DNA of 63,824 nucleotides, counting the filler, from Lenisia limosa (lineage: Eukaryota; Protista; Breviatea): NCBI GenBank assembly GCA_001655205.1. It is 12 parts of 12 records of this genome, joined end to end, with 100 filler letters (N's around TTAATTAATTAA, not from the genome) between each part and the next. Parts side by side here need not be neighbours in the genome. Positions count along the whole stretch, not along the records: positions 10,363 to 30,657 come from LPNZ01009095.1; 11 more parts are not named here. The stretch is one strand, 5' to 3'. Shown in pieces: positions 10,363-30,893 of this stretch. Under the pieces are notes generated by a model, which was not told the DNA's origin, searched no databases, and saw only the letters and a list, made by a program, of their open reading frames with translations. Position 1 is the first letter of the stretch. Each line of letters starts with the position of its first letter. The translations under genes and the position numbers were made by a program.

Positions 10363-10424
10363 TGGGGGGGGTGACATTTACACGATAATGGGGGGGTTGT
10401 TTGCCTTCCCTCCAAATGACAAAC

Positions 10425-13400
10425 CTTCATCAAGACGTGCAAAAGCTCGTCACGTGATCGGATGAGGCCACGCTCAGCGCGCGCCACTCTTTGCGTGAGT
10501 TCCAGGTGCTGGACCTGAGAAGAGGGGTTATAGAGAATAACAACCAGCAAAAAGCCTGAAATATCAACTATTTAGGTGCCCCAGAGGCCCACGTGGAGTT
10601 CGGGTTCTGCAGATGCAAAGACTAGGCTTGAACAAAGGTCCATGAGCCCTGCACGTGACAGCGAAATGTCCACTAAAGAACCTGGGAGTGTGAGGGTCCG
10701 AATGCATAGCTGAGGGATTTACTATATGCTAAGCATGTCGGATCTTTTGAACCATATGTGGCATACCGATTGATTGGATGACAGGGGGAAGTGGCATTTG
10801 TGGGTCTTTGGCAATGATGATGAGTCGTGTTTGCTGTTTGGTTAGAGGAGGGGATACACAGAAAGTCTATTGATACTCAAGGGTTCATGGAAGGGTTATC
10901 AACATACGCTGTCGCTGCCCTTGGTGATGATGTCGGCGATTTGGGGCGAAATGCCACCTGGCGCTAAATGCAGTGCTACCACCGGGGCTGTGGAGATGCT
11001 GCAGAGTGAGGAGTTTNNNNNNNNNNNNNNNNNNNNNNNNNNNNNNNNNNNNNNNNNNNNNNNNNNNNNNNNNNNNNNNNNNNNNNNNNNNNNNCATATG
11101 TTCGCCTATCTAGAAAGCAGAATGATATGGAGACTGAACAACGAATTGAGTATGACATGTGTTATTGTCTGAAATATCATCAATACGCACTCTATCTCTC
11201 ATATTGGGGGCTCCGCACCTAGGGCTTCACTTCGGTTCACAAAGGGAATTTCTCGATAAATCCTCGAAAATTATCTACATTTTATCGGTATTTTTCGAAC
11301 CGAAGTGAAGCCCTATCCACACTGTATCATTTTAAGCTTCGAAGCTCACCTTTCATCCATAGTCGATCCAAAGACAAGGTCTCCGCTGTACATATATCCC
11401 AAAAGGGCTTCGGCCTTGGAGGGGGGGGGGATGAGAGAAAGGGTATACGATTGCACCAGGAAGTGCGTATCACCACGGTACAAGGCTATTGACAATTGTG
11501 TAACAATGATCTGACCAAATAAATTACACTTGAGCCCCTTCGACTGAAAAAAATTGTTGTAAATCGATTTAACATTACCAAAATATTTTTAAACAAAATA
11601 AAATCCAATGCGAAGAAAATTACCATGACTGTTGGGTGCAATGAATAATAGAGAAGGTAGTTTCAAGAAGGGGGTACCCGGGATACCTGGTTGTGCCAAT
11701 CAAGCAGAATCGGCATATCGTGGGCGTAATGCGTCAACGTGGCGTTGGCTAGCCATGATGGTTCGGCCTTCAGCCCCTGGCACTGCCACTCCGACACCAA
11801 CATTTCTGGGGGGGTCAGCTATAAGAACACTTATGAATAAAGCGGGGTTGCTTCAGAGAGGCAATATTCACGAGACAAGTTTACAAAGAAAATGTAATTC
11901 AAGGTAATCGGAAATTGGCACGCGTGATACAAACCCAGGTAATCTCACGCCAAACCCAATTAAGCCTACCTGGGATGCATGACGACAATGGGAGCTTCGA
12001 TGAGGCCACTAGGTCTCTACTGGCTTGGTCGTTGAAGAGGGTCCGTACAAGCTGTGCTCGCGGCTCTGGCGGCAGGGGAGCTGGGGTGGTGGTGAGATGT
12101 GTAGTCAACTCAATTGTAACTGAACACCAATATTGATAAAGACAGGTCACAGTTGAATGATGAAAAGGTGCTATTATCCTTTTTCACAAAACAATTTCAT
12201 ACCCCTCACCTGCAAAGTGTATAAACGCGGCAGTCAACAAGCAGTCGGCAAGTAAAGTTCGGCCCATATCCTCCAAGTTCCGAAGCTCGGACTCCCAGGA
12301 CTCTTGTGCAGGCTCCACTGCCTCCAGGAACTCATTTGCCGCTTCTGGGGGAGGGGGATGAGATTTAACCGATAATTCCCCCTTCCTCCAAAATAAAAAC
12401 AATTCTGTGTATATGCAGGTTGAAAACAAGCAGATATGTCACCAAGGCATTTGATGTGTCAAGCAAGAATAATATTATGTTCAGCAATGATAGCTTAGCA
12501 CTAGGCCTACCCAGGGTCTTTGCTGAAGTAGCGAGCGACGACTTCTGATACGCCGCCTCTATAGCTGCCGACTCGAATGACGACGACAACTGCAGCACTC
12601 GTGCCTGGTGAGGAATGAAGCATGGCAGCATATAAAAAGGTACAAGCTAAGTAAAAAAAAATAAAAATACAATAGTTTTATTACATTATTACAGGATATC
12701 AAGCTAACAAACCAACCTCCAAAGCCTTGCTCTTTTCACGGAGATTGGCTGCACGGCTTCGGTGTTTTGCAAGCTGAACCTTAACCCTGGCTTGTTCATC
12801 TCTGGGGGGGAGGGTAAGCTTGGATGGTTTGACAAGAAAAAGTTTATACGCAATAGTGTTTCAATCAAAAACTGAGAACGCAGCAAAATTTCAGAATACA
12901 TACTCACCTAATTGGTTTCATTTTTTGCTGAATGTTATGGTACTCAAAGAAGTCCAAGGTCCTAAACAGTAATACAAGGACGGTTGGGTCACATTGTTTC
13001 TGTTTGATTACAACGCCCCACAACCCCACCATTGGCAAAGAGTCGCAGCGGCTGGAGACGTCGAAACGGATTCCTGCGTAAATGTAGGGAGAGAAGTGTA
13101 TCGCCTGGGAGGTGAGAAAAAAACAGGCTGGGGAGATGGAAAGGCTACTTTCCCACTACTCCCCCACAGTAAGGCCGTAAGATGCGCCTGCGGAAGACCA
13201 GTGGTCGGGATGGCGTGCAGAGATGCAAGGAACTTGTCGGGAGGTTGAAGGGATCGTCTCACTGCAGGCCATCTGGAGAATAAAACAGTAGGTCGGTAAT
13301 ACTGGAGAAAGTTGCCCCTTCGTCCCCCTGGGTGCCTCTCCATCCCCCCGGGCGCCCCTTCATCCCCCCGGGTGCATACTTGGTGTCGTCAGCCATGCCG

Positions 13401-16400
13401 CGCGGGCCCTGGGCGAAGATCATTGCGGCGGCGACAACCGAAAGAATCTCCTGCGGGGCTGGGTTGAAGGCTCGGAGTTCGGCTACTGATGATCGGTCAA
13501 GCCTGAGGGAGGGGGGTGAGAGACTCTACATCGTGGAGCCAATAATGCTCAGTATGATAGAGACAATAGTGTCGAGCAGACTTTGCTAGCGCGGCCTTTG
13601 AAGAGGCCAGTAAGGGGGCGGCTTGGCTTTCATACTCCTCCAGTGAGGTGGTGATGGTGACAAGGATCTCCTCGAGTCGCCGTGTTTCCGCTACATTGTC
13701 ATTGTTATTGTCATTGCCATTATCATTGTCATTTTTATTGTCATTGTCATTATCATTGTCGTTGTTATTGCCATTATTGTTATGATAAACGCAAGCATCA
13801 CTGTGAGGGTTCCATGGAATACGGACAACAGCTGTTCCTGTCATTCTATCTGAAAACAATCTCACCGTCCTCCTCCTCTGCCTGTTTAGAGACTGTTTGA
13901 GATGATGCACGGTCTTGGCCAATCTGAGTGAAAGGGGTGAGGAAATAGTCATTCGTAATGAAGTAACATTGAGGGGTCTAGAATCAAGCACCCTCGTACT
14001 TGAGCCAGTAATGAGCTGTTGCTGGAGATTTTGTCCTCAACCGCACGGGTCTCGGAATCGATCAATGCTGTTAGCTTTGCTGCTCCATTTGTTTCTTTGC
14101 TGATCTGTGGGGTCAATCGAGCCACCGCTTTTAGGGGAACAATGGGGGCGAATAATAGCCCTGTGGTCCCAAAAGACTCGATATCTCGGAACGCTCAAAG
14201 TTTTTATATTTTGGTGGTCTTTTTCGGACTGTAGGGAAGCCCTACATAAAACAAACAACAACAAACAAGCAGCATATTTCAGAGAAGTTAACCGACCTGA
14301 GCTAAGGCAGCTCTGAGGTTACTGCATCGTTCATCGACCGAGACTCTTCTTTCCCTAAAAAGTGAAATCAATATTCTAGAAGAGCCACAATTGGGAAGAA
14401 AGGTGGCGGTTACGTTACGCAACTTTAGGGCAATTCTAAGTCAACATTTGAAGAAACGTGGCAAAAACCATCCCAGCCAAATGCCAAAGGGACCAGACCC
14501 TCAAACGCTAAGAGTTCCGAAAATGTGTGAATGAACTGGGAAAATGTTCGTGGAGAGAAGAAGCGGGTCCTAAAACCGTAATTTCCACAATTGACCGAGT
14601 TTTCAAAGACCATCAACCAACCTCAAATGCTGCACAACATCGTCATTGGAGGTTTCCACGGTTTTTCTCAGCGCCTCGATACCCGATAAATACGTTGCGG
14701 CAGCGAAGTGCGAAATGTTCTCAGACTCTCCATCCCCTGAATGATCAAACACGTCGTAATTAAACTAATCAAAACTGAAGATGAAGCAACTACCACCCCC
14801 CTACCGGTGATAGTTGGAGCGAGGGACTGTGGGAGGCCCACTTGTACCAGTGTGTACTCAGACCACATTGTGAAGTAGTCTTAATCGTGAAAGACGAGGC
14901 AGTGGGTGTGGTATAGTATATGTTTCACAGGCCGTAAGAATCACAAGTCAAACATACATAGTAATTATGATATGTACATATGAACGCATAATGTCATATC
15001 CCCCCGTGGAAAAGAGCAGCAGAGTATATCACCAACATACTCATTCTGCAAGTTGAGAGTATTGTGGGACATCTTTCCGTGATGGTCTTGAAGGACTCGT
15101 CATCAGGACGCAGCGACAAAACAATGTGCAGGTTTTGCCGAACCTTGGAGGTGAGAAATATCATCCAAATCATCCAAATCTTACAGCGAACAGGTAGGTG
15201 GGATAAGGCAATGTATATGACAAAAACTAAAGAAATATTAACTCTATTGCGCAAAGTATATCCCCCCACCTTCATGTCGAACCAGCCCCAACATGCTGCC
15301 GGCGTGTCCAACAAGGCCAGTTTGTGAACAAACGGTCGGATTCGTGAGAGCACCGACTTTTCCTTTGGAGATTAGTGGTAAGAAAGGGACGGAGATTAGC
15401 GGGAAGAAGAAAGGGGTGACATCGGTGTATGTTTTTGTCAATGGAGGGTTGCAGGGATTACACGATAAATAAGCCTTCTTGCGAGTTCAATACTACTACT
15501 GGGATAAGCAAGCGTATCATATAATACGTTTCATATACAAAAGAAGACTTCATCAATGGAATCAGCCCCTTACCTCGGAAGGACTGTGTAAGTTGGGGAC
15601 CCGCTGGTGCGAGAGAAGAAGTTCGACAGTTGTGAGAATGTCGGAGTTGTTGAGCAGGTCGCCTGTGATGTACAGCGTACACGAGAGTTCTTCTAAACCT
15701 GAGGGGGGGGGGGGGNNNNNNNNNNNNNNNNNNNNNNNNNNNNNNNNNNNNNNNNNNNNNNNNNNNNNNNNNNNNNNNNNNNNNNNNNNNNNNNNNNNNA
15801 AGATACGTGGATAAAGGTGCTCACTTGCTTTGCGGCAGAGGTGCGCCAGGTCCTTGAGGAATTTGGTGTGGGTGTAGTCTGCAGAGGCTTTTGGGATGAA
15901 GAGGGTGTGTCTAGAGAAGTAACGGATAAAAACCAACTTACAAAACACAGTAAAACAAAACAAATCATTGATCCATACCCCCCCACTCAGCCAAGGCCGC
16001 AGCCAGCTTGGTGGTGGTGGTCTTGCCCGATCCTGAGTCTCCAATCAGCACCGCGCGGGCACCAGGTGTGTTCAGGATGCTCCTGAGGGCGTGAGGTTAG
16101 ACAAATGACAATCAAAATAAACATCAATATAACAAGAGAGCTACATATTTGCCATAGTCACCCACAGAAGTCTGACAAGGTGTTCCACTGTCGGTACCGT
16201 CAAATCAACCTGGGGGGTAAGAGAGGTAAGAGGGAATAGGCAATTTGGCAAGAAGGATGGCTGAAGCACTTTTCATGATTATTAAAGGTCCAAGTAAAAG
16301 CCTAGTAATATATCCAAGCATGGACCAGTACAGCGCAATAAAGCAAAGCGCCACCGCCAACATTGCCAGTTTGGCCTGACGAAAGAGACGTGACTTCCTC

Positions 16401-19400
16401 GGGGTACTCCAGGGTGTCCAGGCGTGCTGTGATTCCGTCTATCAACTTGCCCATGTCCGTTGTGGGGATGTAGGGCTGGGGGAGGATGAATCAGGCACTC
16501 ATAAGAGTTAGCTATCAGAGTTGCCTATGTACGAATTCAACAACCCATTGCACACCGCATCTCTGAGGGCCTTATGGGGGTGGATTGAGGAGTACCATGT
16601 CGTTGCCATGCCCAACACTAAGGGGGCAACCTAGGATGGGTGGGTCAGAAAAAGCAATTTAGTTTTCAATACTACTTTTCCCGACTTTAACATCTATATG
16701 TACATGGATAGAACATCTTTGAATAAACAGTCCCCCTGTATTCAAGGCAATATCACCCCCACGCCTTACGTCATCAAATATCTTCTTGACGGTTTCCAGC
16801 ACCAAGTCGTTGTACTGCGACTTATCAATGTCCTCAATCAAGCCGTCTAAAATGTGAGGGGTGTACTGTTACATGGTCACGTGTAACAAGAAAAAAGACG
16901 CAAGTGGTCACGTGAAACAAGGAAAAAGATACAAGGTTGCATAATTGCTAAAGTGTCGGAAGTGAACGGCAAAGCAGTTGCTTACCAACAGGTTGATAAA
17001 GGCCTAACCAGCCTAAGCCCACACAGCAGACAATACTCAGCCTGAGCCCAAAGACCTGACAATACTCTTGCGGTTTCATGCACCCAAAGCTTGACGACGT
17101 CCTCAACTTTCGAGTGGTAGTCCGGGCTAGCCATCTGCATTCCCTGGAGTACGTTAAACACTAGGCTATGGTCTTGAAAAGACGGAATTGCTCGATAATC
17201 CTCGTTAAACATTCATTTTCAGTCACTTTTCGATTGGGAAGCTATATCAAGATAGCCTTGTTGATCAAACTTTGAGCGTTGTGAGCATGTTCATGGCAGT
17301 GTATGTGGCGATGCCCGTCCCACCTCAGCAATTTTGATGATGGACGCGAGGTCGAAGTGATAGGCTTGCCGGTTCTGCGAGGGCGGGAAAACGTGCCGCA
17401 GTGTTGTTACAACCTCGGTCGTGGCCTGAGATATTCTGGGGGGTGGTGATGTTAGCGTAGAGATTGTAAACAAAGATACGAACATAATCAATGTACCGAT
17501 TCAATCAAAACCAACTCACCTCGGAACTGCAGATATGGCAATATCAGAGAACTTCGACAGAGCACGATGGAACAAACTTTCACAAATTACCTAAACTAAT
17601 CAAAACTCATCCGATCAATGATCAATAGAGTGTCTAACTAATCAAAACTAATCAACACTGATCCAGTCAACAGATGTTTTGTATCAAATGCCCCCTAACG
17701 TGCAGAGAGCCATTGGAGGGCCAATCAAGATAGACCGGGATGAAGTGGCTGAGGAGGCTCGTAGGGAGAACAGTGTGTGTTTTCAGGGGGCTTGCTGTGG
17801 CCAAATACGTCACCGAATCTGGGGCAGCTGTGCCTAAGGAGGTTATGAAATGTGGGCTGTGCCCTTCAATATGAGAGATTGCTTGTGTTGAGAGTAAAAG
17901 CGCTCAGAAGCCCACCAGCGTGAAGGTCGGAAGAGCTTATTGACGCCATCTCTTCGAAGTAGGCAATGAGCGATGATGAGGGCGGCCTATGTTGTTAATC
18001 ACAGGCCTTTTGTTCATTTAGGACTCATAGAGGAATGACTAGCTGCTCCCCCTCCCACAGGGAAGTCAAGTGCCTGAGAGTGACAACTGTTTGTTTGTCG
18101 GTGCTTGCAGTGTCGTTTTTACTGGGTCATGAGGAACAAAGAACCACAAATAATACCTCTCTTCAGCATATGACACAACAGACTCTTCAGCATATGGTAC
18201 AACCGACTCTTCAGCATATGGTACAACCAACTCTTCAGCATATGGACCACTGCCTCACCTGAAGTCGATCAGTTCGGAGACGGACGATATCTTGGACTGT
18301 CTATGCAGGAAAACGTCCACGACTTCATGTGTGGGGTTACTGGGGTGATTAGTGTTTCAGTTTTAACTTTGAGATCCTTTAGCGATTAAATTCGTAACAT
18401 CGCCACTATCACCTATACCCCCACCATGGATATGAAGCTTGGTATGGCTCCTATACACCTCCCACCTTGCCTCCATTCGGCTCTTCCACTCCGCGATGGT
18501 GGCTGATTTACCCACTCCGTTGCTACCAATGAGCAGGACGTTGCTGCCGCCAAGAGACAGGAGTGCAAAGAGGAACATAACCCTGCGATGGGTGAGAACA
18601 TCATTTGCTGATATGAAGCAAACTGAAAAACCCAATGAGTATCAGCGTGTATTTGCATAAGATGATAATGTCGAGTCATTACCCCCGTCCATTGAGAGTC
18701 ATATTGAATGTAGTCGTGCTCAGCCACTCCAAACCTCTCATGGTCAGGGTTAGCTACGAATCTCGGTAAGTCTCTAGTTAGTTGTCCGTGAGGGCTACGT
18801 GTTTCTTGGTCCTCAGGATGGGCAAAACCCTAGACTGTGAGCGAATTCACTCTCCCATATATGGATGGAGCCCAACATTATATACTCTGTATGATATGAT
18901 ATTCCCATGTCTGGATTTAATAATATCATATATCATATCATATATCATATGTACTATATATAATATGATATCAGAAAGCACTCCCTCCCACCGCCGGCAC
19001 CGGAAGACCGGACCAAGGCACCCATTTCCCGGACCGGGGGTGGACCACAAACTGAGACAGGCTCTCGGGCAGATGTGAGGCGAAGTCCTGGGGGGCGGGG
19101 GGTGAGAAACATAATCTCATATTCTTGGATTCAAGAGATGTTGCACAGAGATTGACACAACGCAGCAATAAGTTGCATAATGATTGACACAACACAACAA
19201 TAAGTTGCATTTACGATTGACACAACACAACAATAAGTTGCATTACGATTGACACAACACAACAATAAGTTGTATAAAGGTTGACACAAAAATAAGTTGC
19301 ACAGAGGTTGACACAACACAACAATAAGTTGCATAATGATTGACACAACACAACAATAAGTTGCATTACGATTGACACAACACAACAACAGACTCTAATA

Positions 19401-22400
19401 GTTCAATAGTTCCCTACGTCCAATGGAGTGCCTTTTAGTGCCTTGAAAACAAGGTCCTCGTAGAGCGCAAGTCGCGATGAGGGCGAGTTACTACCTTGAG
19501 GGGGAGGGGGGTGATGGCTTTGGGGGCGTACATGCATATGAAGCGGAAGGTAGATAAGTCANNNNNNNNNNNNNNNNNNNNNNNNNNNNNNNNNNNNNNN
19601 NNNNNNNNNNNNNNNNNNNNNNNNNNNNNNNNNNNNNNNNNNNNNNNNNNNNNNNNNNNNNNNNNGTGGGAGCAAAAAAGAGAGGTTATTTCAATAAATC
19701 CTTGATAGCACTACATATCTACAAGCATGCATCATGCCTCAAAGCACAAATCATGAGGGGCATACCTGGAGGTGGTGTAGCCTCAAAGCCCGAGCCGCCG
19801 CCCCAGAAGGCTGAAAATAGGACCAGACGAAGGAGCAAGTCGTTGGACTTCTTTGTGCTGCGGGNNNNNNNNNNNNNNNNNNNNNNNNNNNNNNNNNNNN
19901 NNNNNNNNNNNNNNNNNNNNNNNNNNNNNNNNNNNNNNNNNNNNNNNNNNNNNNNNNNNNNNNNNNNNNNNNNNNNNNNNNNNNNNNNNNNNNNNNNNNN
20001 NNNNNNNNNNNNNNNNNNNNNNNNNNNNNNNNNNNNNNNNNNNNNNNNGTTGGGAGTAGAGGCCCTCAGAATGTTGACAGAGTTCTCAGTAATCAGGGCG
20101 GCTGAGTCGTGAATGAAGAGACAGCTAGGCGCCATACCAACAAAGGATAGTAATTTGGTCCCAAATAACACAATACTCCCAGCTGCCTAAAGCTGCACAC
20201 GATCGTTATACAGTCTACTTCGGACCCCCTCCCCCCACATCCCATATGAGCCTTGCCTGAGTTGACCTTCATGCCCATCTTGTTGATGCTTGCTTTCTGC
20301 ATCTTCAACATCCCTACAAGCGTGAAGACTACCCTCAAGGGAACAGGCAAGATAAACTATGGGCACTCTCAGGGTGATCTGATCCCTCTAAGTTCCTTTG
20401 GGTTTCCCCGGGGCGACTTAATCCCCTTATAACCCTCATGGTCGAAGTCACTGGGTTAAAGGAAACCACTGTTATCAGCAACCTGTTCATGAGAATATCA
20501 GACCCCCACCATTGAGATACGACATCATACGCCTGACAATGATGCAAGACGCATCGGCATTCTCAGCAATGGTCATTTGCTGCAGGTCTGGAGAGGGATG
20601 AGCAACAATTATATAAAATGACAGAAGCATATTCTGTTGTTAAATATTTGACAGTTCAGTTCAGTTCACCTTCAACGGTTCCGGTCCGGGCACTGAAAGT
20701 GGTGTTGGACTCGTAGACATTCGTGAGGTCCTCTGTAGCAAGAGAAGTCTGAAATGGTGAATAAAGCATTCTTAATATGGTGTAATCCAAGACACTTCGC
20801 ACCGTGACAAGTCCGCCATAGTCGACCTCAGCCTTGCGCGGTGCTAAGGGCTGCGGGCAGAAAGCCGTTCCTGTCGTGTTAAAAGGAGGAGCATGTGTGG
20901 AGCTAGTACTAGCTCTTTTGGACATAATGCTATTGTCATAAATTTCTATTTTGGAAAATTCCTCTGCAGCCACTCACCATGGCTTTTCGGCAGGCTCAAA
21001 GCAGCTGAAACAACGCGAGGAACAACCGCCATGAGTATTGGTGTAATTGCGGCCTGATTAGTGAGTATTGGTGTAATTGCGGCCCAATTAGTAAGAATCG
21101 GTGTATTTGCGGCCTAATTAGTGAGTATTGGTGAAATTGCGGCCTAATGAATAAGAATCGGTGTACTTGCGGCCTAATTAGTAAGAATAGGTGAAATTGC
21201 GGCCTAATTAGTGAGTATTGGTGAAATGAAAGGGAATCAAAATATAAATATCGAACAAATCTAAGCTGACAATTTCAAGCCTCGAACAAATCTAAGCTGA
21301 CAATTTCAAGCCTCGAGGAAATATACATCAATGTGTCCACCCCCAAAACGCATCGTTTTGCCCCCCCCCCCCCNNNNNNNNNNNNNNNNNNNNNNNNNNN
21401 NNNNNNNNNNNNNNNNNNNNNNNNNNNNNNNNNNNNNNNNNNNNNNNNNNNNNNNNNNNNNNNNNNNNNNNNNNNNNNNNNNNNNNNNNNNNNNNNNNNN
21501 NNNNNNNNNNNNNNNNNNNNNNNNNNNNNNNNNNNNNNNNNNNNNNNNNATCAGCCATCCCGCTGCTCACATCTCATTGTTACTCTCAATGATTATGCGG
21601 AAGTTCGAAGGGACCTGAATGAGGTCGCCATTTGGAAGGATGACACTCGGACAGTTGGCAAAGGGGGACAGGGCTCTGGCCCACCTGTCGACATGCTGTC
21701 CGTTGACTATGACCCACTGGGGGGGGGGGGGGNNNNNNNNNNNNNNNNNNNNNNNNNNNNNNNNNNNNNNNNNNNNNNNNNNNNNNNNNNNNNNNAATCA
21801 CGAATCGAATAATCTGAAACTCCAAACAAAAACAAGCAATAACAAACACAAGCAACCAACGCTAAAACTAGACATAAACTAGATCACAAAAAGTAAGGGT
21901 GAACGGACAGGTGACAAGCGTAGAGTTCATGATGGGTAAGATATGAATAGAACACACAATTAACAACGGTACGAAAGTATCAAACAATGTATAGCATGAT
22001 AACAACCATCATACATGTGGGGTGTTGTGGGGGTCGCAAACAGCCATTCGCAGCGCCGCCGCCACCGTGCCATCAACCCACACGCCGGCAGCTGTGAAGT
22101 GTCCCAAAACGGAAACGTCATCGTTGCAGTCGAGCGTCTATGTTAGTCAAGTGTGTCATAACAACAAAAGAGCATCTTTAACTGAATAAAACGGCGTATC
22201 AAGTGTTACTCAAAGGAAATTTACCGAGCAACACTAAGCCCACGTCAGCAGAAGCGGCGATGACAACTGGCGGTACGGATACGGCAGACAGAGCAGCAAT
22301 CAGCGTAGAGTGCATGGCCGTTTTGCCCGAAAATGTTGGACCAACTAAGTCTGCAATAGGGGGGGTGGTGAGCAACAGAGTATCATTTTACAGAACCCAA

Positions 22401-25400
22401 GGGGACAACTAAATTTTGTTGTACTATTTCCCTCTGTTAAGTTTCAGAGTTACAACATAGAGGCATGCCCACAGATAAGTTTGGATATTGACAGAGCAGA
22501 TGCGAGTTCGCAGATACGGGCTAAGAAGTCACTAGAGGGCTGCAGGCCCAGTTGTTGGGCAGCCTTGGGCAGAGAGTTCTGCAGCACGGCGTCCGTAATC
22601 TGAGTGGTGAGGGTTCTTTGATAAAAGGAGGAACGGAAACAGATTCCTTGATGTGTGACTTATTTACTGCTTCTCCCCCCTCCCCACAGTAGCCAGGTCC
22701 GGGCTGCAGAATGATGACGTCAGCAGTCTGGAGAGAAGGACGCGTGGCCGGCCTGGGGGCATGCCTGGTTCTATGGGGGTAAGAGATGCACAGGGAAACA
22801 AAAACGAACAAATCGCCGAAATAGCTCCGGGGTGAGAGGGTTTGAAGTAGGGCTTTACTTCGGTTCGAAAAAAGACTGAATTTCCCGATAAATCTTCGAA
22901 ACTTATCGATATTGTACCGGTCTTTTTCGAACCGAAGAGTCTCCCATTGAGGCCCATCCCACCAAGCACTAGTTCAGACGCCCAGCCCACCAAGTACTAG
23001 TTCAGACGCCCAGCGGAGAACTGAAACTTCAACATCCGTGTCGCCAAGGATCGTATCAACCTCGTCTTCATCGTATTCTGAAGGAGTAAAGTGGTACCGT
23101 TGAAAAATAAAATAAAATAGTATTACTGCTGACTAAACAATTAATAACCTATGGCACCAAATAGTAAAATTCAGCACAGAGCGGCGGTAAATAGAACGCA
23201 GTTGCCCCAATTGAAACGGCTTTTCAACAACACTCATCAGTAACATCAGCAGAAAGACCCTCCCCCCACCAGCCACGATATCAGGCCGAACACTCAGGAT
23301 GGAGTGACCGGAGGGAGTGGGTCTTTCGGAGGTTGGTGAGCTTGTCCGGCGCGGGGTCGAGGATGACGATCGGATGTCTCGGCTTGCTGAGGGGTGATTC
23401 ATCTNNNNNNNNNNNNNNNNNNNNNNNNNNNNNNNNNNNNNNNNNNNNNNNNNNNNNNNNNNNNNNNNNNNNNNNNNNNNNNNNNNNNNNNNNNNNNNNN
23501 NNNNNNNNNNNNNNNNNNNNNNNNNNNNNNNNNNNNNNNNNNNNNNNNNNNNNNNNNNNNNNNNNNNNNNNNNNNNGGGAGAGGGGTTGAGGTTGAGGAA
23601 GGAACTGGCAGGAGCGAGTGCCGACGGAACGGGCAGAAGAGCTGTGCTGATTCCTGCTGGGTTAGGCTTTCTCTATGTATGTAGTGTACATAGTATGATA
23701 TATTTCATATGTACTATTATCATATGAAATGTGAAAATGCTATGTATACAGGTATATTACAGGGATTATCTGGTGAACTATACACCTCATCTATAGTATA
23801 CACCCCATCTATAGGGTTTTGATGATGAACACTTTGATCCTACCATTCCCTGATTTCAAACAGCCATCAGAGTGCCCATATTGCAGCAACTATCCAACTT
23901 GGCATTGCAGACCTAGATATGGCACCATCCATCCCACTAGGCATTGACGGTGTGGACAGCAGATCGCCAGTCCCGGGACGCACGTTGACAACGGGGTCCG
24001 AGCTTGAGGGCANNNNNNNNNNNNNNNNNNNNNNNNNNNNNNNNNNNNNNNNNNNNNNNNNNNNNNNNNNNNNNNNNNNNNNNNNNNNNNNNNNNNNNNN
24101 NNNNNNNNNNNNNNNNNNNNNNNNNNNNNNNNNNNNNNNNTATTACTTTTGAATCATGATAGCAATTTAACAAATACTATTTTTATGATCAAAGAAAGAC
24201 AGAAACAACCACCCTGAGTCCAGCGGGGGGGACCTACCGTGCAGCCTCAGTAGCTAGGGCTATGATATCCACTAATCTGGGGAGGGCTGAAAAGCAAGGG
24301 CCTAGGGGGCGGGGGTAAGCGACGGAAATTTCTATGAAGAACATTGGCGTACTAATCACGAACCAAATAATTTGAAACTCCAAACAAACCAAAAGCATAA
24401 CAAACACGAGAAACAATCGTTAAAATTAGACTAAGCCAGATAACTCAAAACACAAATACAAAATCCGAGCCAGGGGGGCGAGTAATAATCAAAGCACGTG
24501 GGGCCAATAAGTAACCTTCAAGCTTACCCTTATTATCGAAGGAGATTTGTACTTTACTGATCATTGCAGTGACTCTTCCAGCACTTGAGATCCATGATGA
24601 GAACCTGAGGTGTGATATGACTAGAACCTGCGGTGTGATATGACGAGAACCTGAGGTGTTATATGACGAGAACCTGAGGTGTTATATGACGAGAACCTGC
24701 GGTGTGATATGACGAGAACCTGCGGTGTGATATGATGAGAACCTGAGGTGTGATATGACGAGAACCTGCGGTGTGATATGACGAGAACTGAGGTGTGATA
24801 TGACGAGAACCTGCGGTGTGATATGACGAGAACCTGAGGTGTGATTTTGAGTTGTTTTATGAAACAACCACATGATGATACTAAAAATAGGTTGTATCGC
24901 CAAAGAAGAGATTGGTGATAAAAAATAAGAAAAAAAATTCGCCCAGCCATTTGTCTTTGCATAATAATCAACCCAAATTAGCCGAACAAAGACCGACCCA
25001 GAAGCGAGCAGTATTCTCTCAGCAAGTTCGGCAAGGTCGGGGGTTGAGGATTTGACGGGGGGCAGTGCTGCCAGGAATGCAGGAGGGACCTTCAGGTGCA
25101 AACTTGGTACCTGCAGTATCAGAGTAGAACCACAATATCACGTATCTTGAGGCCAATAATCCATTAGACAAATCTTCGAAATATATCGATATTTTATCGG
25201 TCTTTTTCAAACCCGAGTGAAACCATAATTATACCTCCCCCCTCCCCACGTCCTCTGCAGTGGCCACAATCATAGCTGAGTGATTGAGAGGTACCAAATT
25301 ATCGCCAATTGTATAGCTCGGATCCTGGGGGGTCAGTTGAGGTGTTCATATGCGTCTCGTAAGCAATAGGGCTATCATGGCCGAGTTACGGACCTTGGCA

Positions 25401-28400
25401 GCAAGAGCCTTAGAAATTCCTGCAATAATGGGGGCAAGAGTGGCAGCAACTTGAGGCCGAAGGTACTCCACATCCCTGATGACAAGCCAACTGCCGCTCT
25501 GTGGGTGTAAAATTGGAAAATTGACGAAACAAACAACTACACCATGGCCACACTATATAGCCCCCCACCATGGCCACGCCTCTGAGCGCGGACACGCCGG
25601 CCGCGGTGTCGATGAGGTTGTCGGAGTGGATAGTGATGCAATGCCGGCCGCACTCGCGAGCCAGCTGATGCATTGTCGTGGCTCTTCCGGAGTCACGCGG
25701 GCCTGGGGTGTAAAATTGGGAAATTTAGGGCTATCTAATAATAATAAAAAAAAAACCCAAAATCAACGAGGGTTGAGAACACAAAGGGGGGGGGGNNNNN
25801 NNNNNNNNNNNNNNNNNNNNNNNNNNNNNNNNNNNNNNNNNNNNNNNNNNNNNNNNNNNNNNNNNNNNNTAGTGAGAGAGCTGCCGGCAGCAACGGACGC
25901 AGTGATGGTGGAGAACAACGAGTGAGCATCGCGAGTAATAACTGCAGACTGGGGGCATCCCAGGTACTCGTAGCCATAGGGCTGAGTGAATGATGCCTGA
26001 GGGTGAGTGAGTAACATGCCGTTTGAATGGGGAGGAAAAGAGAAAAGAAAGAAAGCCTGAGAAAACACAATACCAACCACAAATCGGATATCAAGTACGG
26101 GCCAATCAAAATGATGGGTGCATTCAACAAAGGATGATGAATAGAGTCTCACAAATCCTACCATTTCGACTGTGACTGTTTTGGTTTCAGGATCCCATAC
26201 GTGGCGCAAAAGTGAGCGCCAAAGAACGTTTTTGGCATACTCAAAGTCATCGCATGACTGCAAATCTTCAACTACTGCGCGCCACCACGCCTAAAATGAC
26301 GTAAAAATATGAGTTTCAGTGTTCTGGACTGAGCGGAATTAATCATATCTTGAAATCTCTCTGTCTTTAACATGTCCAACGTATCCATGGGTACCAAGAG
26401 CTCACCAGCTGCAGAATGATGTTGGAAACGGCCAGGTGCACGTGAGTGGGCTGTGTGTCGCGTGAAAGTTCCACCAGCTGTAACGTCATATCATAATACG
26501 GGTAAAGAAGCTAGTTCTTTAACTGCGAACAAGACAATAGCCACAATAAAGCTCTGGTTCTGAGATGACAACCCAGAAATCTTATCCCCCACCCTTGTAA
26601 TGTATCCCCCACCCTTGTAATTTTGTTGTTGATGGAGAGCCCGAGAGCCGCGAGCCCGTTAGCAGGGTCCTCTGTGAAGATCTCCTCGATCTTGGCGGTG
26701 TGGGCTATGGAACATGACGTCAATACGGCCTAAAATGTCAAGAGAAATACAGCTTAAAACGTCGAAGGTCAATATGACTGTAATAACTTTTCTCTTTTCC
26801 CCACCTGTCCAATGAAGGAGGTAGCCCAGCTCTCAATGGCGACAGTGTGGAAGGACTCCACAGCCCTACTAATTTGATTCCTAACGGTGGTCTTGGTCTC
26901 GTCCTACAAGGCTTAGCGAACCGAAAAGGGATTACGTTTAATGTGGTGGATGAGTAGATTATGTTAGGGCTGGCTTGGGAGCTATTTAAACTGAGAGTTA
27001 GCTAGCCCTCTTACCACCACCGCCGCCAGCCAGACTTCCACGTTCTCGGACTGCTGTGATATGACAATTGGCGTGTCCAAGGTCAGCACTTCTCCCTCGT
27101 GACTGGGGAGTTAGGCAACGTTAGAAACTGAGACACAATTTGAAATGATACTGTTTCAAGCGAGAGAATATATGGGCCAAGAAACTCATTTCTATTTTCT
27201 CCAAAACCAGTCCCTCCCTCCCCACCTTGTTAGGGCCACAATTGAGGAGTTTGTGCCGTCTGAATCGTCAGAGCAAATGTGTAATAGGAGGGAGTGGGCA
27301 TTGCAAATAAAATAGCGAATTAAGTTTTCCGAAAGAGTAATGTGATAGAGTCTAATGATTCAGTCAAGATTAAATATAGAGATGAGCTAGTCGCTCAAGC
27401 ATTTCCCTTCCATTTTCGAATCTTTTTCGTGCCTCCCTCACATACACTCATAAACTCAGTCATCCCCACCTTTCTCCCAGACACAAGCGGTGACTCCGGG
27501 CAGGACAGCAGCCAACACCGTGGCCATCGCCTCTTCAGGCTGCGAGGCTCCTGGGGGGAGTAAAATTGGAAAATTTGTGAAATAAAAACAAGCCCAAAAT
27601 CAACTCTATTGGCTGACAACACACAAGGGTTGTTAACCACAAAACACAAAACCCAAGCCAGCCGCTTCTGTAGCACCGCATCCCATCACTAAAGCGCAAA
27701 AGGGGATGGAAGATGGGGGGGGGTACAACTCCATATTGATTGACCAAACGTTTCATGAGTAAGATAGCACTTAGTCCCCCTACCTGCCAGTCCAGCAGTG
27801 GTGGTCTCGGGTGACAGCAGAAGGAGACGGGGGCATGTCAGCCGACGTTGTTCCACTATCTCTACCACTGCCTNNNNNNNNNNNNNNNNNNNNNNNNNNN
27901 NNNNNNNNNNNNNNNNNNNNNNNNNNNNNNNNNNNNNNNNNNNNNNNNNNNNNNNNNNNNNNNNNNNNNNNNNNNNNNTGGTGTGCATTTTGAGTATATT
28001 TTGCGTATATCATTTAAAGCTGAGTTTTAATTCCAAAACATAACGCGACCCACCTTATAGACGATCCTGAGCTCAGCCTTCCAGTCAATGAGCTGCGACA
28101 ACAGGCCTGGTTTATTGGCCAACACGGCGAGCGAGGGTGTCAGCTCAGCCTCCGCTGCCAAGTCCCTTAAGCCGCTGTCTACTCGGTCGAAGAGCTGGGG
28201 GATTAGGAGAAATAAAACAAGTATCTGGGTGATGAATAGCTGCGGGTGTGATGAGGGGTGGAGACCCCATGAATTTCTTGGACCCTATGAGAACATTTCG
28301 ACAGAAGACCAAGCCCATGACAGACCTGAGAAGCCTCAGTGGGGTGTGCGGCTTTGAAGGTATCGGATCTCGCGATACTCTGCATTCCGACCCACAGCTG

Positions 28401-30527
28401 CTGCACTGCCAACCAGGCTCGGAGCACTGACTGTGTGTGGGGTAAAGAGAAAAAACAAATAATAACAAAAAACCCTAAAAACTCAGCATGGAGAAAAATA
28501 ATCAGTAATTGCGATGCCAAATGGTTGCAATTAATTATGAACCGAATATCTCAACAAAAGAAAGACTAATACGAATAATATGGAGGAGTGTATTTAACAT
28601 ATAAGACGGGTCCACAGTCTCAGCCAAGCAATAAACAGCCCACCTCCACGGCCTTCAAACTGCCGCTCCATTTGGCCAGGCTATCAGCAAAGTTGACCGC
28701 ATAACGCGACGCTGATACCGACTACAATGTCACTTGGCTATCAAATAAGGAATAATATGGTATTATCCCCAAGACAAGAATTATCGTTCTTTATTGAGCA
28801 TTAATCGAGAAAATAAGTCTTTCTTCGGACTGTAAGGAAGTCCTAATCATAACGCAAAAGGAGCTTCACAAATCCACGTAAATAACAACCCGGCCCACCC
28901 TTAGTGACTTCTGATGTTCCGCCAGTTGGTCGAAGAGAATGTCATTTTCGACTAGGATTGCATGCCCCTCGTTTCCTGGGGGTGAGGTTAGGGCGAGAAG
29001 GGAACAATAGGCCTGGTCTACAAACATACCTACAGACTGCAGACTAACAGCTCTGCCTCCCCATGCCTCCTCAACCTAAAATGGTTAGAAGTGACTGCAA
29101 TTTCAACATCAAGGTGACACGAACCTTCAAGATAGTCCGTTCTATGCTTGCTTCTCGTCTTGCTCGGTCGCAGATATCTTCCACCTGGTATACATAAGAA
29201 AGACTGTATATGGAGTTGTACCAAGAGAACAGCTTCAGCTGTAGTGTTTCCAGTACAATAACAACAAAAATGCGTCTCAAGTACCGTGGTTGAGAGAGAC
29301 GACAGCTTGAACGCCAAAACATCCCGCAACGTAGCCTTCGCCACCTGTCCAATAAAAAACAGGAGACAATTATCATGGTTCCAGAAATTATAATGGTGTT
29401 TCAATCTTCATTTGAGCAGAAGAATTAAGACTCCACATCAGTCAGCGTTCCCATTTTCCGAGAAAATATTGATACTTCTCGAAGAAGACAGCCAAGCCAA
29501 GCCAGCCCCCGACCGGCAAGACAGTGACACCGGCCGTGCGTGCCAAATTGGCCCAATGCCGATCGCGTACACAGTCGCCTTCTGGGGGGGGGGGGNNNNN
29601 NNNNNNNNNNNNNNNNNNNNNNNNNNNNNNNNNNNNNNNNNNNNNNNNNNNNNNNNNNNNNNNNNNNNNNNNNNNNNNNNACTTTGTGAAAAAATAAAAT
29701 ATGAGAACATGTAGAACACACCACCCACTCAAATTGACCAAAAGAGGCAAGTCGGCTCTGATTTCAGCAATGAAGTTGTCCATTGCTGCCACAATGGGCC
29801 AGTCCAGAATGTTCTAGGTAGTAAAATGACTGGAAAATCGGAGGGAAGTCAAAACAGTTTGGTGGGTATGCCAGAAGAGCAATAATGGCCAATGATGAAA
29901 AGACATGTTTTTAGTATAGTAATCCACCTTAATTTTTTTTTCTCATTGCTATAAACATGTATAATAATGACACCTGCTATACCCATTCCCCCCACTTCGG
30001 AGAGATTGGACAGTAAGCCTCGCCCATCGTTGAGGATTTTGGACAGTGTTTCAGTCTTCACCTCGGTCCACAGTGTATCTGAAAGAGGTAGCAAGAACCA
30101 AGGTAAGTACGCGGCAGAGGATACCTGGCCAATCCCCTCTCCTTCCTCCCCACTGTCTATGTAATCCGTGAGCTTCAATAGGCTCTCAGCGACATCCCAG
30201 CACTCAGTGAGCTGCTGAAGATCTAACACGCACTCTTTTAGGTCCTAGGGGTGGGGGTGACATAAAAAAGAAGAGCATGATTCAATGTTTCATTGGAAAT
30301 CAGAAACTGTCGTTTTTGGAGGTAAAGAGACACCCAGCAACCTGACTTGCCATAAGCGGAATGTCTAAAAGATCAAGTCGATCGTTCAAAGACGTTGTGT
30401 CCGTCTGCAGCACCTCAACCTCGTGGCTCAGACGCTCAATGGCGATTCGCGCGTCATCAACAACAGCTCGGCCTTCGGCCCAGGTTTTCGGAGCCTCCTG
30501 CAGGAACCGGGCTCTGAATGCCGTAAT
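10425..30527 (-). CDS. Highly divergent dynein heavy chain-like protein, linker region to AAA5; C-terminus absent from the contig
   Basis: Exons occur in the expected order. Linker region: CVRDRHWANL, RARREASIE, VLRAWLAVQQLWVGMQSI, KRRWPRCWLLS. AAA1 entry: PYGYEYLG. AAA2 GPTFSGKT and WVIVNG; AAA3 GSNGVGKS and VKLWVHETARV; AAA4 GDSGSGKT and NLHIVLSL. Stalk: ELRAFNPAP, TLLADCLLTAAFI. AAA5: LVSEWQCQGL, MPILLDWHNQ. Confidence 0.9.
11220..11315. mobile_element. hAT-type MITE, family C
   Basis: TAGGGCTTCACTTCGGTTC...GAACCGAAGTGAAGCCCTA is a perfect 19-bp terminal inverted repeat (TIR). Flanks TCCGCACC / TCCACACT match 6/8. Confidence 0.88.
13696..13785. repeat. (TCATTG/TTATTG)n hexamer microsatellite in a dynein intron
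   Basis: Visible directly; it produces the NDNDND and CHCHC ORF artefacts. Confidence 0.9.
18157..18245. repeat. 24-bp minisatellite, about 4 copies
   Basis: Unit ACTCTTCAGCATATGGTACAACC(G/A). Confidence 0.9.
19135..19388. repeat. About 32-bp minisatellite, about 8 copies
   Basis: Unit TTGACACAACACAACAATAAGTTGCAT(TTACGA/AATGA). Confidence 0.9.
21031..21226. repeat. 30-bp minisatellite, about 6.5 copies, two interleaved variants
   Basis: Units GTGAGTATTGGTG(T/A)AATTGCGGCCTAATTA and GTAAGAATCGGTGTA(T/C)TTGCGGCCTAATTA. Confidence 0.92.
21251..21314. repeat. 31-bp tandem duplication
   Basis: TCGAACAAATCTAAGCTGACAATTTCAAGCC, two copies. Confidence 0.85.
22848..22936. mobile_element. Family C MITE with truncated right end
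   Basis: TAGGGCTTTACTTCGGTTCGAAAAAAGACTGAATTT...CGAACCGAAG. Confidence 0.8.
24302..24432 (-). repeat. Family B repeat ending at a dynein acceptor
   Basis: Minus strand CTCGTGTTTG...GGAGTTTCAAATTATTTGGTTCGTGATTAGTACGCC...CTTACCCCCGCCCCCTAG|exon. Confidence 0.8.
24594..24845 (-). repeat. 23-bp minisatellite, about 11 copies, containing the 3' splice site
   Basis: Minus-strand unit ATCACACC(G/T)CAG|GTTCTCGTCAT. The last copy is the acceptor of the exon (G)FSSWISSAGRVTAMI. Confidence 0.88.
27551..27691 (-). repeat. Family A repeat, longest copy (141 bp), ending at a dynein acceptor
   Basis: TAGTGATGGGATGCGGTGCT...GGTTAACAACCCTTGTGTGTTGTCAGCCAATAGAGTTGATTTTGGGCTTG...AAATTTTCCAATTTTACTCCCCCCAG|exon. 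Confidence 0.85.
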
Positions 30528-30893
30528 CTGTATAGATTAGAGTGGTGCTGACTTATTTAGGGGAGGAGGGAGAGTTAAGTAGGAAAGTTTTTGAAACAAA
30601 TAAGCCAAAAATCAACTCTGTTGACTGACAACGCACGAGGGTTGATAACAAAACAAANNNNNNNNNNNNNNNNNNNNNNNNNNNNNNNNNNNNNNNNNNN
30701 NTTAATTAATTAANNNNNNNNNNNNNNNNNNNNNNNNNNNNNNNNNNNNNNNNNNNNCCCCCCCCCCCCGCCTTTTAAGCGAGAGAAATAATATATGATA
30801 CGTATCATATATAGCTATGTCTATATATTAGAAATCCAGGGAAACAAATAAATACATAGGGATACCATGACCCCCCCCCCACCCCCCGCTCAC

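Follow-up and report, generated by a model that had tools for sequence, protein, structure and literature searches.

An apparently intact, very divergent dynein heavy-chain gene with a degenerate AAA1 site in Lenisia limosa: a probable non-motile pseudo-motor

It is only in recent years that non-motile dynein heavy chains have come to be seen as a functional class, following the description of DNAHX in 2025 and a re-evaluation of DNHD1. Both proteins are from animals, and pseudo-motor dyneins have so far been described only in animals. DNAHX was characterised by Chai et al. as a non-motile, animal-restricted chain derived from the outer-arm alpha chain, in which Walker B and the Walker A Lys are retained, ATP is bound, and the stalk, the microtubule-binding domain (MTBD) and AAA4S contain insertions; the same authors noted the absence of Walker B residues in DNHD1, and their work provides the precedent for heavy chains that are non-motile and have a degenerate AAA1 (PMC11785096). 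In the survey of Kollmar, 17 dynein classes and 75 orphans were distinguished, classes 11 (DNHD1) and 13 being metazoan, class 12 holozoan, classes 10 and 17 chytrid and classes 14-16 oomycete; aberrant and orphan dyneins proved widespread and were argued to be bona fide genes, not pseudogenes, and their ATP sites were explicitly not analysed (PMC5100056). Here we report a dynein heavy-chain gene from a window of 63,824 nucleotides of Lenisia limosa (the window being the whole stretch of DNA that was analysed), where it occupies the minus strand of the piece 10363-30657. Judged from its sequence, the gene is probably intact, single-copy and intron-rich, and encodes, in a heterotrophic flagellated protist, a very divergent dynein heavy chain that is probably a non-motile, microtubule-binding pseudo-motor.

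The AAA1 site was read against at least ten canonical dynein genes of the same genome, whose AAA_6 exons score 45-150 bits each, as compared with 11-14 bits for the gene studied here. The canonical paralogues read GPAGTGKTET, SGAW.C(F/L)DEFNR, (I/F)(I/F)T(M/L)NPGYAGR and LP.NLK.LFRP, and the gene aligns with them residue for residue across two AAA1 exon junctions. Parts hidden by runs of N in the window were taken from L001 (ENA contig NODE_898 of ERZ3820729), a contig without N from a second assembly of the same sample. The exons of this region are:
26162..26290, minus strand: exon directly upstream of AAA1 (AWWRAVVEDLQ...TVTVEM), AG/GT borders, phase 0; L001 8249-8377
25870..25996, minus strand: AAA1 exon a (..YGYEYLG..ITRDAHSLF..SSLT), Pfam AAA_6 positions 1-30, one-to-one with paralogue L003; L001 8543-8675
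within N gap 25796-25869, minus strand: final 6 bases of AAA1 exon a, from L001
25569..25702, minus strand: AAA1 exon b with the degenerate Walker A GPRDSGRAT, Pfam AAA_6 positions 39-87, borders AG/GTGGGG
25394..25498, minus strand: AAA1 exon c with the degenerate Walker B SGSWLVIRD, by paralogue alignment
25235..25324, minus strand: AAA1 exon d with the sensor-I loop, by paralogue alignment
24988..25110, minus strand: AAA1 exon e (EVPSLHLK, VPPAFLAALPPV, ..TPDLAELAERILLASG..), its donor being the less certain of two options
23949..24012, minus strand: putative AAA1 lid exon (..ALKLGPRC..SRDWRSAVHT), AG/GT borders, in phase, weak homology; L001 10426-10512
hidden in N gap 24013-24140, minus strand: first 23 nt of the AAA1 lid exon, from L001
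22473..22599, minus strand: exon with the AAA1 lid end and AAA2 start (..FLARICELASALSISKLI); L001 11870-11996
29852..30536, minus strand: two open stretches, likely linker exons, of approximate extent and without Pfam match

The Walker A motif of AAA1, at 25702-25677, reads GPRDSGRAT versus GPAGTGKTE in the paralogues, with Lys replaced by Arg, Thr by Ala and an Asp placed within the loop. At Walker B the gene has SGSWLVIRD against SGAW.C(F/L)DE, the Asp-Glu pair having become Arg-Asp (seen within SGSWLVIRDVEYL of exon 25498-25394; the R-D pair occupies 25477-25472). The sensor-I loop, which includes AMIVATAED within exon 25324-25235, is TAEDVGR against TMNPGYAGR, i.e., two residues shorter and without the Asn, Pro and Tyr. 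The arginine finger which AAA2 supplies to AAA1 is replaced by Ser (SIHSC, TVSRC in the paralogue), as read from L001, the exon in question lying entirely inside the window N gap 21374-21549. Set beside the motile dyneins of classes 1-9, with their Walker A Lys and Thr, Walker B Asp-Glu, sensor-I Asn and AAA2 arginine finger, the gene thus shows GPRDSGRA, IRD for FDE, TAEDVGR for TMNPGYAGR and HSC for SRC. The first-pass annotation of this DNA had also reported PPAFLAALPPV in place of LPDNLKALFRPV; the Arg of LFRPV is indeed absent under either alignment of this region, the exact alignment itself being ambiguous, since MAFFT favours pairing EVPSLHLK with ELPD-NLK, followed by an insertion of ~7 residues (VPPAFLAALPPV lies within exon 25110-24988). 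The sensor-II Arg is possibly kept (..DWRSAV..), the alignment being uncertain there. Every catalytic AAA1 element that was checked is lost. This degeneracy is not a product of chance, because over three AAA1 blocks the paralogues share 58-75% identity among themselves and all possess GPAGTGKT, DEF, TMNPG and LFRP, whereas the gene is 17-41% identical to them. The catalytic degeneracy claimed in the first-pass annotation from Walker B and sensor I therefore goes further than was claimed, as the Walker A substitutions K->R and T->A and the loss of the AAA2 arginine finger are added to it; all the AAA1, AAA3, P-loop and MTBD motifs which it quoted were located on the minus strand.

The same annotation had placed the AAA1 Walker A in the N gap 25796-25869, which is wrong, as the motif lies outside the gap. 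The gap closure that it proposed was carried out with L001, which had been reached through the protein of a neighbouring open reading frame (ORF) also recorded on that contig; L001 is 100% identical to the window at both flanks of every gap from ~19.7 to 30.6 kb and extends it by 4 kb upstream. The gap is in reality 39 nt long (L001 8670-8708) instead of 74 N, and a Logan contig of run X1 spans it with equal length; both contigs share the sample with the window assembly and hence are not independent data. It contains the 6 bases that finish the exon, the GT donor and 31 bases of the intron: beyond ..SSLT at 25870 the exon goes on with I, T and a Gly codon's first base (..SSLTIT+G), after which GTAGGT opens a 126-nt intron ending in ..TTTTACACCCCAG, and exon 25702-25569 begins with GPRDSGRATTMHQLA. 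As the L001 sequence joins exon, intron and next exon, the two sides of the gap are continuous and in frame. In total L001 closes eight N gaps of the window:
29596-29680: 85 N, true length 40 nt (L001)
27874-27978: 105 N, true length 60 nt (L001)
25796-25869: 74 N, true length 39 nt (L001)
24013-24140: 128 N, true length 85 nt (L001)
23405-23576: 172 N, true length 180 nt (L001)
21733-21795: 63 N, true length 48 nt (L001)
21374-21549: 176 N, true length 174 nt (L001)
19865-20048: 184 N, true length 112 nt (L001)
Most of these gaps adjoin long C or G homopolymers. Coding sequence is hidden in three of the eight (a complete AAA2 exon, 23 nt of the AAA1-lid exon and 6 nt of the AAA1 exon), which means that N gaps of this assembly conceal coding exons, and the gap lengths are mostly over-estimated.

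Open stretches of the gene match Pfam domains in the collinear order DHC_N1, AAA_6, AAA_6, AAA_7, AAA_lid_1, AAA_8, AAA_8 and MT, each match being below the gathering score:
farther upstream, on L001: DHC_N1, weak
25871-26290 and 25413-25724, minus strand: AAA_6
18366-18641, minus strand: AAA_7
16985-17212, minus strand: AAA_lid_1
15968-16096 and 14997-15371, minus strand: AAA_8
12187-12438, minus strand: MT
This order, together with alignments to PDB entries at homologous residue numbers, reproduces the superfamily layout of tail, AAA1, AAA2, AAA3, AAA4 and coiled-coil stalk with MTBD. In phmmer searches against PDB, with matches in the range of 13-19 bits, an AAA2 exon corresponded to residues 2297-2345 of human DYNC1H1, an AAA4 exon to DNAH6 2563-2605 and the AAA3 lid to DNAH2 2620-2655 (the best PDB matches being DNAH2 / I1-beta); the Walker A exon gave no PDB match at E<=10, and the only PDB match of the DHC_N1 exon was a designed fibre protein. 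By its sequence the gene is a dynein heavy chain, yet distant from every solved class. It is present in a single copy in the genome assembly (G000; 49 Mb in 11,727 contigs, incomplete), and the read depth over it equals that of the remaining contig. Since its introns share dispersed repeat families with the contigs of canonical dyneins, the gene belongs to the host genome.

Downstream of AAA1, up to the contig end at window position 10363, directly after the AAA5 start, the following exons were recognised:
22244..22350, minus strand: AAA2 P-loop exon with intact GPTFSGKT at 22342-22319; spliced spacing one-to-one with the paralogue RHG.M.VG...GK
22015..22137, minus strand: AAA2 exon (..LGHFTAAGVWVDGTVAAALR..), borders checked
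21571..21716, minus strand: AAA2 exon (WVIVNGQHVDRW..LPNGDLIQVPSNFRIIIE), aligning to human DYNC1H1 2297-2345, borders checked
in N gap 21374..21549 (L001 12964-13075): AAA2 exon with the arginine-finger position, SIHSC versus TVSRC
18466..18582, minus strand: AAA3 P-loop exon with intact GSNGVGKS at 18527-18504; Pfam AAA_7, 21.7 bits
18259..18339, minus strand: AAA3 exon 2 (..VVDVFLHRQSKISSVSELIDF), borders checked
17916..17986, minus strand: AAA3 Walker B exon, YFEEM versus F(I/V)DD(L/I)N in paralogues
17700..17833, minus strand: AAA3 sensor/Arg exon, LKTHT..SLLSHF; paralogue C11044 has GGGRQ, then the R-rich RRVLSRF
17590-17520, 17435-17324 and 17143-17056, minus strand: three more AAA3 exons including the lid (Pfam AAA_lid_1), phases checked
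16082-15987 (GDSGSGKT), 15910-15825, 15698-15574, 15362-15270 and 15143-15041, minus strand: five AAA4 exons (Pfam AAA_8; DNAH6 2563-2605)
14104-14000, 13923-13866, 13690-13565, 13485-13380 and 13272-13168, minus strand: exons of the first stalk coiled-coil helix (CC1) and MTBD
12187..12438, minus strand: open stretch of approximate extent with the post-stalk exon, from the second coiled-coil helix (CC2) to the AAA5 start (..LLADCLLTAAFIHFAG); Pfam MT positions 293-325, weak

AAA2, AAA3 and AAA4 all keep GxxxxGK[ST], the GDSGSGKT of AAA4 lying intact at 16042-16019 (the N gap 15716-15799 is intronic, between AAA4 exons), so that the retention of the three P-loops and of an MTBD-like segment, noticed at first pass, holds. 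The canonical form of the AAA3 sensor/Arg segment is GGGRN..RF.RHF. The SLLSHF reported at the place of RF.RHF is present in exon 17833-17700, and AAA3 is short of ~25 residues upstream of the LKTHT..SLLSHF segment. The AAA3 lid is 45% identical to that of paralogue C11044 over 60 amino acids, the best residual similarity of the gene, and the post-stalk stretch 12187-12438 is 34% identical to the same paralogue. The spliced CC1 and MTBD helices 1 to 3 have canonical spacing, with a typical MTBD helix 1 (..ELRAFNPAPQEILSVV..) in exon 13485-13380 and with the W..a and F..L helices. An N/D-rich and a Gly-rich tract near the MTBD were considered as disordered insertions of the DNAHX type and rejected, as in-phase GT-AG introns remove both. 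A microsatellite of AAT/GAC type at ~13700-13790 on the minus strand is open in frame and N/D-rich, and, being intronic, merely mimics a disordered stalk insertion.

Homology and splice rules served to define the 29 exons manually, and a script check followed in five blocks. All 29 have AG and GT borders, with GTGGG and GTGAG as recurrent donors; the 24 junctions are without exception in phase, and not one stop occurs among 1029 codons, in agreement with the earlier observation that every exon checked was open. The GC content is 55% in exons versus 42% in introns, and it is higher at third (60%) than at second (48%) codon positions. When neutral decay of the gene sequence was simulated down to 60, 40 and 30% amino-acid identity, on average 16, 24 and 27 stops appeared, respectively, the minimum being 9 stops in 30 runs at 60% identity; the simulation was substitution-only, and indels would add frameshifts. 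Because no stop is found where neutral decay would bring 16-27, the divergence must have accrued under selection for an open, spliceable frame, and from its sequence the gene looks maintained despite extreme divergence.

Several points weigh against the reading of the gene as an intact pseudo-motor. The exon borders come from homology and splice rules rather than from complementary DNA, and homologue searches and inspection were performed exon by exon, with frames followed in blocks. AAA5, AAA6 and the C-terminus (the C-terminal third), as well as most of the tail, are off the contig. The sole RNA run of the same study, which may not cover the organism, gave contigs only on intronic repeats and constitutes no evidence either way. 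As no orthologue was found in the searched databases, dN/dS is not estimable: a word-index protein search with a linker exon returned the window's own ORF alone, a HMMER search started from the two AAA1 N-terminal exons gave no genuine match among 1.84e9 representatives (match P0002 being spurious, without a Pfam domain and matching through an internal repeat only), and of 73 pattern matches in a scan of JGI metagenomes 0 were confirmed. Finally, P-loops with Arg in place of Lys can still bind nucleotide in other nucleoside triphosphatases, which makes a nucleotide-free AAA1 uncertain.

The lack of RNA support and of detectable orthologues, along with the destroyed catalytic site, would also be expected of a pseudogene, i.e., of a once functional divergent dynein that was silenced recently and in which disabling mutations are still to come; DNHD1, too, was long held to be a 'ghost gene' (PMC8754002). 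Against this stand the open frame, the in-phase junctions and the complete set of AG/GT borders described above, the one-to-one spacing with paralogues across junctions and the intronic position of all repeat insertions seen. A very recent death of the gene is possible, but considering these facts we regard the pseudogene explanation as unlikely.

Repeats of several kinds lie in the introns of the gene. One ~20-nt sequence, TT(T/C)CCAATTTTACACC(C)CAG, closes two AAA1 introns and supplies the acceptor (window 25703-25722 and 25499-25519; L001 8782-8801 and 8985-9005), and a further copy lies at L001 6967-6982. An 18-mer of this sequence occurs 833 times in the 49-Mb genome with one mismatch allowed, versus 0 times for the reversed control, and the read depth over these spots is 100-3000x the single-copy level; it looks like a short interspersed element forming intron 3' ends, in an introner-like manner. 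Tandem repeats with a 23-nt unit in ~13 copies and a 30-nt unit in ~8 copies are also intronic (window 24594-24880, L001 9625-9945; L001 13194-13433), and at least three more dispersed families, likewise in introns of the gene (L001 3551-3609, 3973-4031 and 6895-6953; 10073-10155 and 12596-12678; 9291-9337 and 11536-11582), also have copies in the canonical dynein introns on C10852 and C11044. The 3' half of a second divergent dynein (post-stalk region, AAA5, AAA6 with ..GSWLVLQTVDL.. and C-terminus) was found on the minus strand of contig C7841 at ~22900-29800 (L025, L029), scoring ~20 bits per exon on Pfam Dynein_heavy versus 58-68 bits for canonical genes. It was rejected as the missing 3' part of our gene, since a post-stalk segment is already present on C7841 itself and the DNA similarity between the two is limited to repeats.

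An orthologue of a named aberrant class, namely DNHD1 (class 11), DNAHX or one of Kollmar classes 10 and 12-17, would share with our gene the degenerate AAA1 known from DNHD1 and DNAHX. The marker-family search of the genome revealed no Wnt, no nuclear-receptor zf-C4 and no chlorophyll a/b-binding LHC proteins; one SH2 domain, two fungal-type Zn_clus matches and at least ten dynein heavy chains were found. By these markers the host is probably neither animal nor holozoan but a heterotrophic flagellate; a zoosporic-fungus-like host is possible, the two Zn_clus matches leaving room for a chytrid-like organism, and it is in chytrids that classes 10 and 17 occur. Only animals have classes 11 and 13 and DNAHX, class 12 being confined to Holozoa, and with animal and holozoan marker genes missing, membership of DNHD1 or DNAHX is unlikely, although the marker counts are a weak indication in an incomplete assembly. 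The stalk of class 12 is without a typical MTBD and coiled coil, in contrast to our gene with its typical MTBD helix 1, and DNAHX differs from it in keeping Walker B, in keeping the Walker A Lys and in having MTBD insertions. The link with DNHD1 drawn at first pass is not supported: the class is metazoan-specific (PMC5100056), Wnt, nuclear-receptor and SH2-rich signatures are missing from the genome, and the HMMER search with the two AAA1 N-terminal exons, which covered this region only, yielded no relative among the 1.84 billion representatives. Overall, orthology to a named class appears improbable.

It is quite improbable that the protein is still motile or ATP-driven, by a non-canonical AAA1 chemistry (Arg acting for Lys and Asp as the catalytic base) or by a drive from AAA3/AAA4, since, for all the retained GxxxxGK[ST] motifs of AAA2-4, the acidic pair FEE at the AAA3 Walker B and the normal look of MTBD and stalk, four separate AAA1 elements are lost together, AAA3 has lost its sensor and Arg residues too, and we know of no dynein that moves without AAA1 hydrolysis.

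The reading as a maintained, non-motile pseudo-motor is consequently preferred. AAA1 chemistry drives the dynein linker swing and the ATP-triggered release from microtubules, and an empty AAA1 in canonical dynein corresponds to the tight microtubule-binding state. The same AAA1-driven mechanics are summarised in PMC11785096. Gone from AAA1 of our gene are the Lys that binds phosphate, the Thr and Asp that bind Mg, the catalytic Glu, the sensor Asn and the Arg acting in trans; the site would be unable to hydrolyse ATP and probably would not bind Mg-ATP productively. Because AAA1 could not hydrolyse ATP, no ATP-driven cycle of linker swing and release would be expected, neither step being able to turn over in the absence of AAA1 chemistry, and the nucleotides of AAA2-4 would be structural. 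Given a normal-looking stalk and MTBD, and with an empty AAA1 corresponding to strong binding, a static microtubule-binding, structural or regulatory role, or that of a scaffold, most likely in the flagellum, would be the most plausible one; in outline this agrees with the tether or axonemal scaffold suggested in the first-pass annotation. More tentatively, the inactivation may differ in kind from that of DNAHX, AAA1 being, with the loss of Walker A, Walker B, sensor I and the arginine finger alike, probably empty and not ATP-locked and the stalk and MTBD normal; the protein might then cross-link microtubules permanently, in a rigor-like state, or act as an axonemal tether. If true, pseudo-motors would arise repeatedly in dynein evolution as a recurrent outcome of dynein duplication, and this one would offer a natural "rigor" dynein for studying communication between ring, stalk and MTBD without AAA1 chemistry.

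Compared with the canonical axonemal dyneins of the same genome, such as the DNAH2/I1-beta-like one on C11044, the gene has an equal domain order and the similar AAA3 lid described above, whereas they keep GPAGTGKT, DE, TMNPG and the SR finger; its residual similarity, being best to this I1-beta / DNAH2-type paralogue, points, if weakly, to an axonemal origin. The orphan and aberrant dyneins of protists and fungi (Kollmar 2016: 75 orphans, classes 10 and 14-17) resemble it in being lineage-restricted, very divergent and intact and in having a dynein-type tail, represented here by the weak DHC_N1 match; this comparison is by description of the classes, the ATP sites not having been analysed in that survey. 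With DNHD1 the gene shares a high divergence and a poorly conserved AAA1 devoid of catalytic Walker B residues; DNHD1 is needed for the flagellum to form and has been proposed to lack motility (PMC11785096). In contrast to our gene, DNHD1 belongs to a metazoan-specific class (PMC5100056), the genome here looking non-animal; no similarity between the two is detectable in the one region searched, and DNHD1 is reported to have many disordered insertions, whereas the apparent insertions of our gene are introns in the modelled parts. The likeness to DNAHX (dynein-X, sea urchin XP_041462850) consists in the lack of motility, proposed in our case, in a degenerate AAA1 Walker A (T->V in DNAHX) and in the loss of the sensor-I Pro and Tyr. 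In our gene none of the Lys, Thr, Asp and Glu remains, whereas DNAHX has preserved Walker B and the Walker A Lys and is ATP-bound; DNAHX is clearly of outer-arm alpha descent and confined to animals, whereas our gene resembles no class closely and its PDB matches show no preference for outer-arm chains; and the insertions of DNAHX in the stalk, MTBD and AAA4S block microtubule binding, whereas the MTBD of our gene, examined over helices 1 to 3, has canonical spacing. The likeness of this gene to the animal DNHD1 and DNAHX is probably of independent origin.

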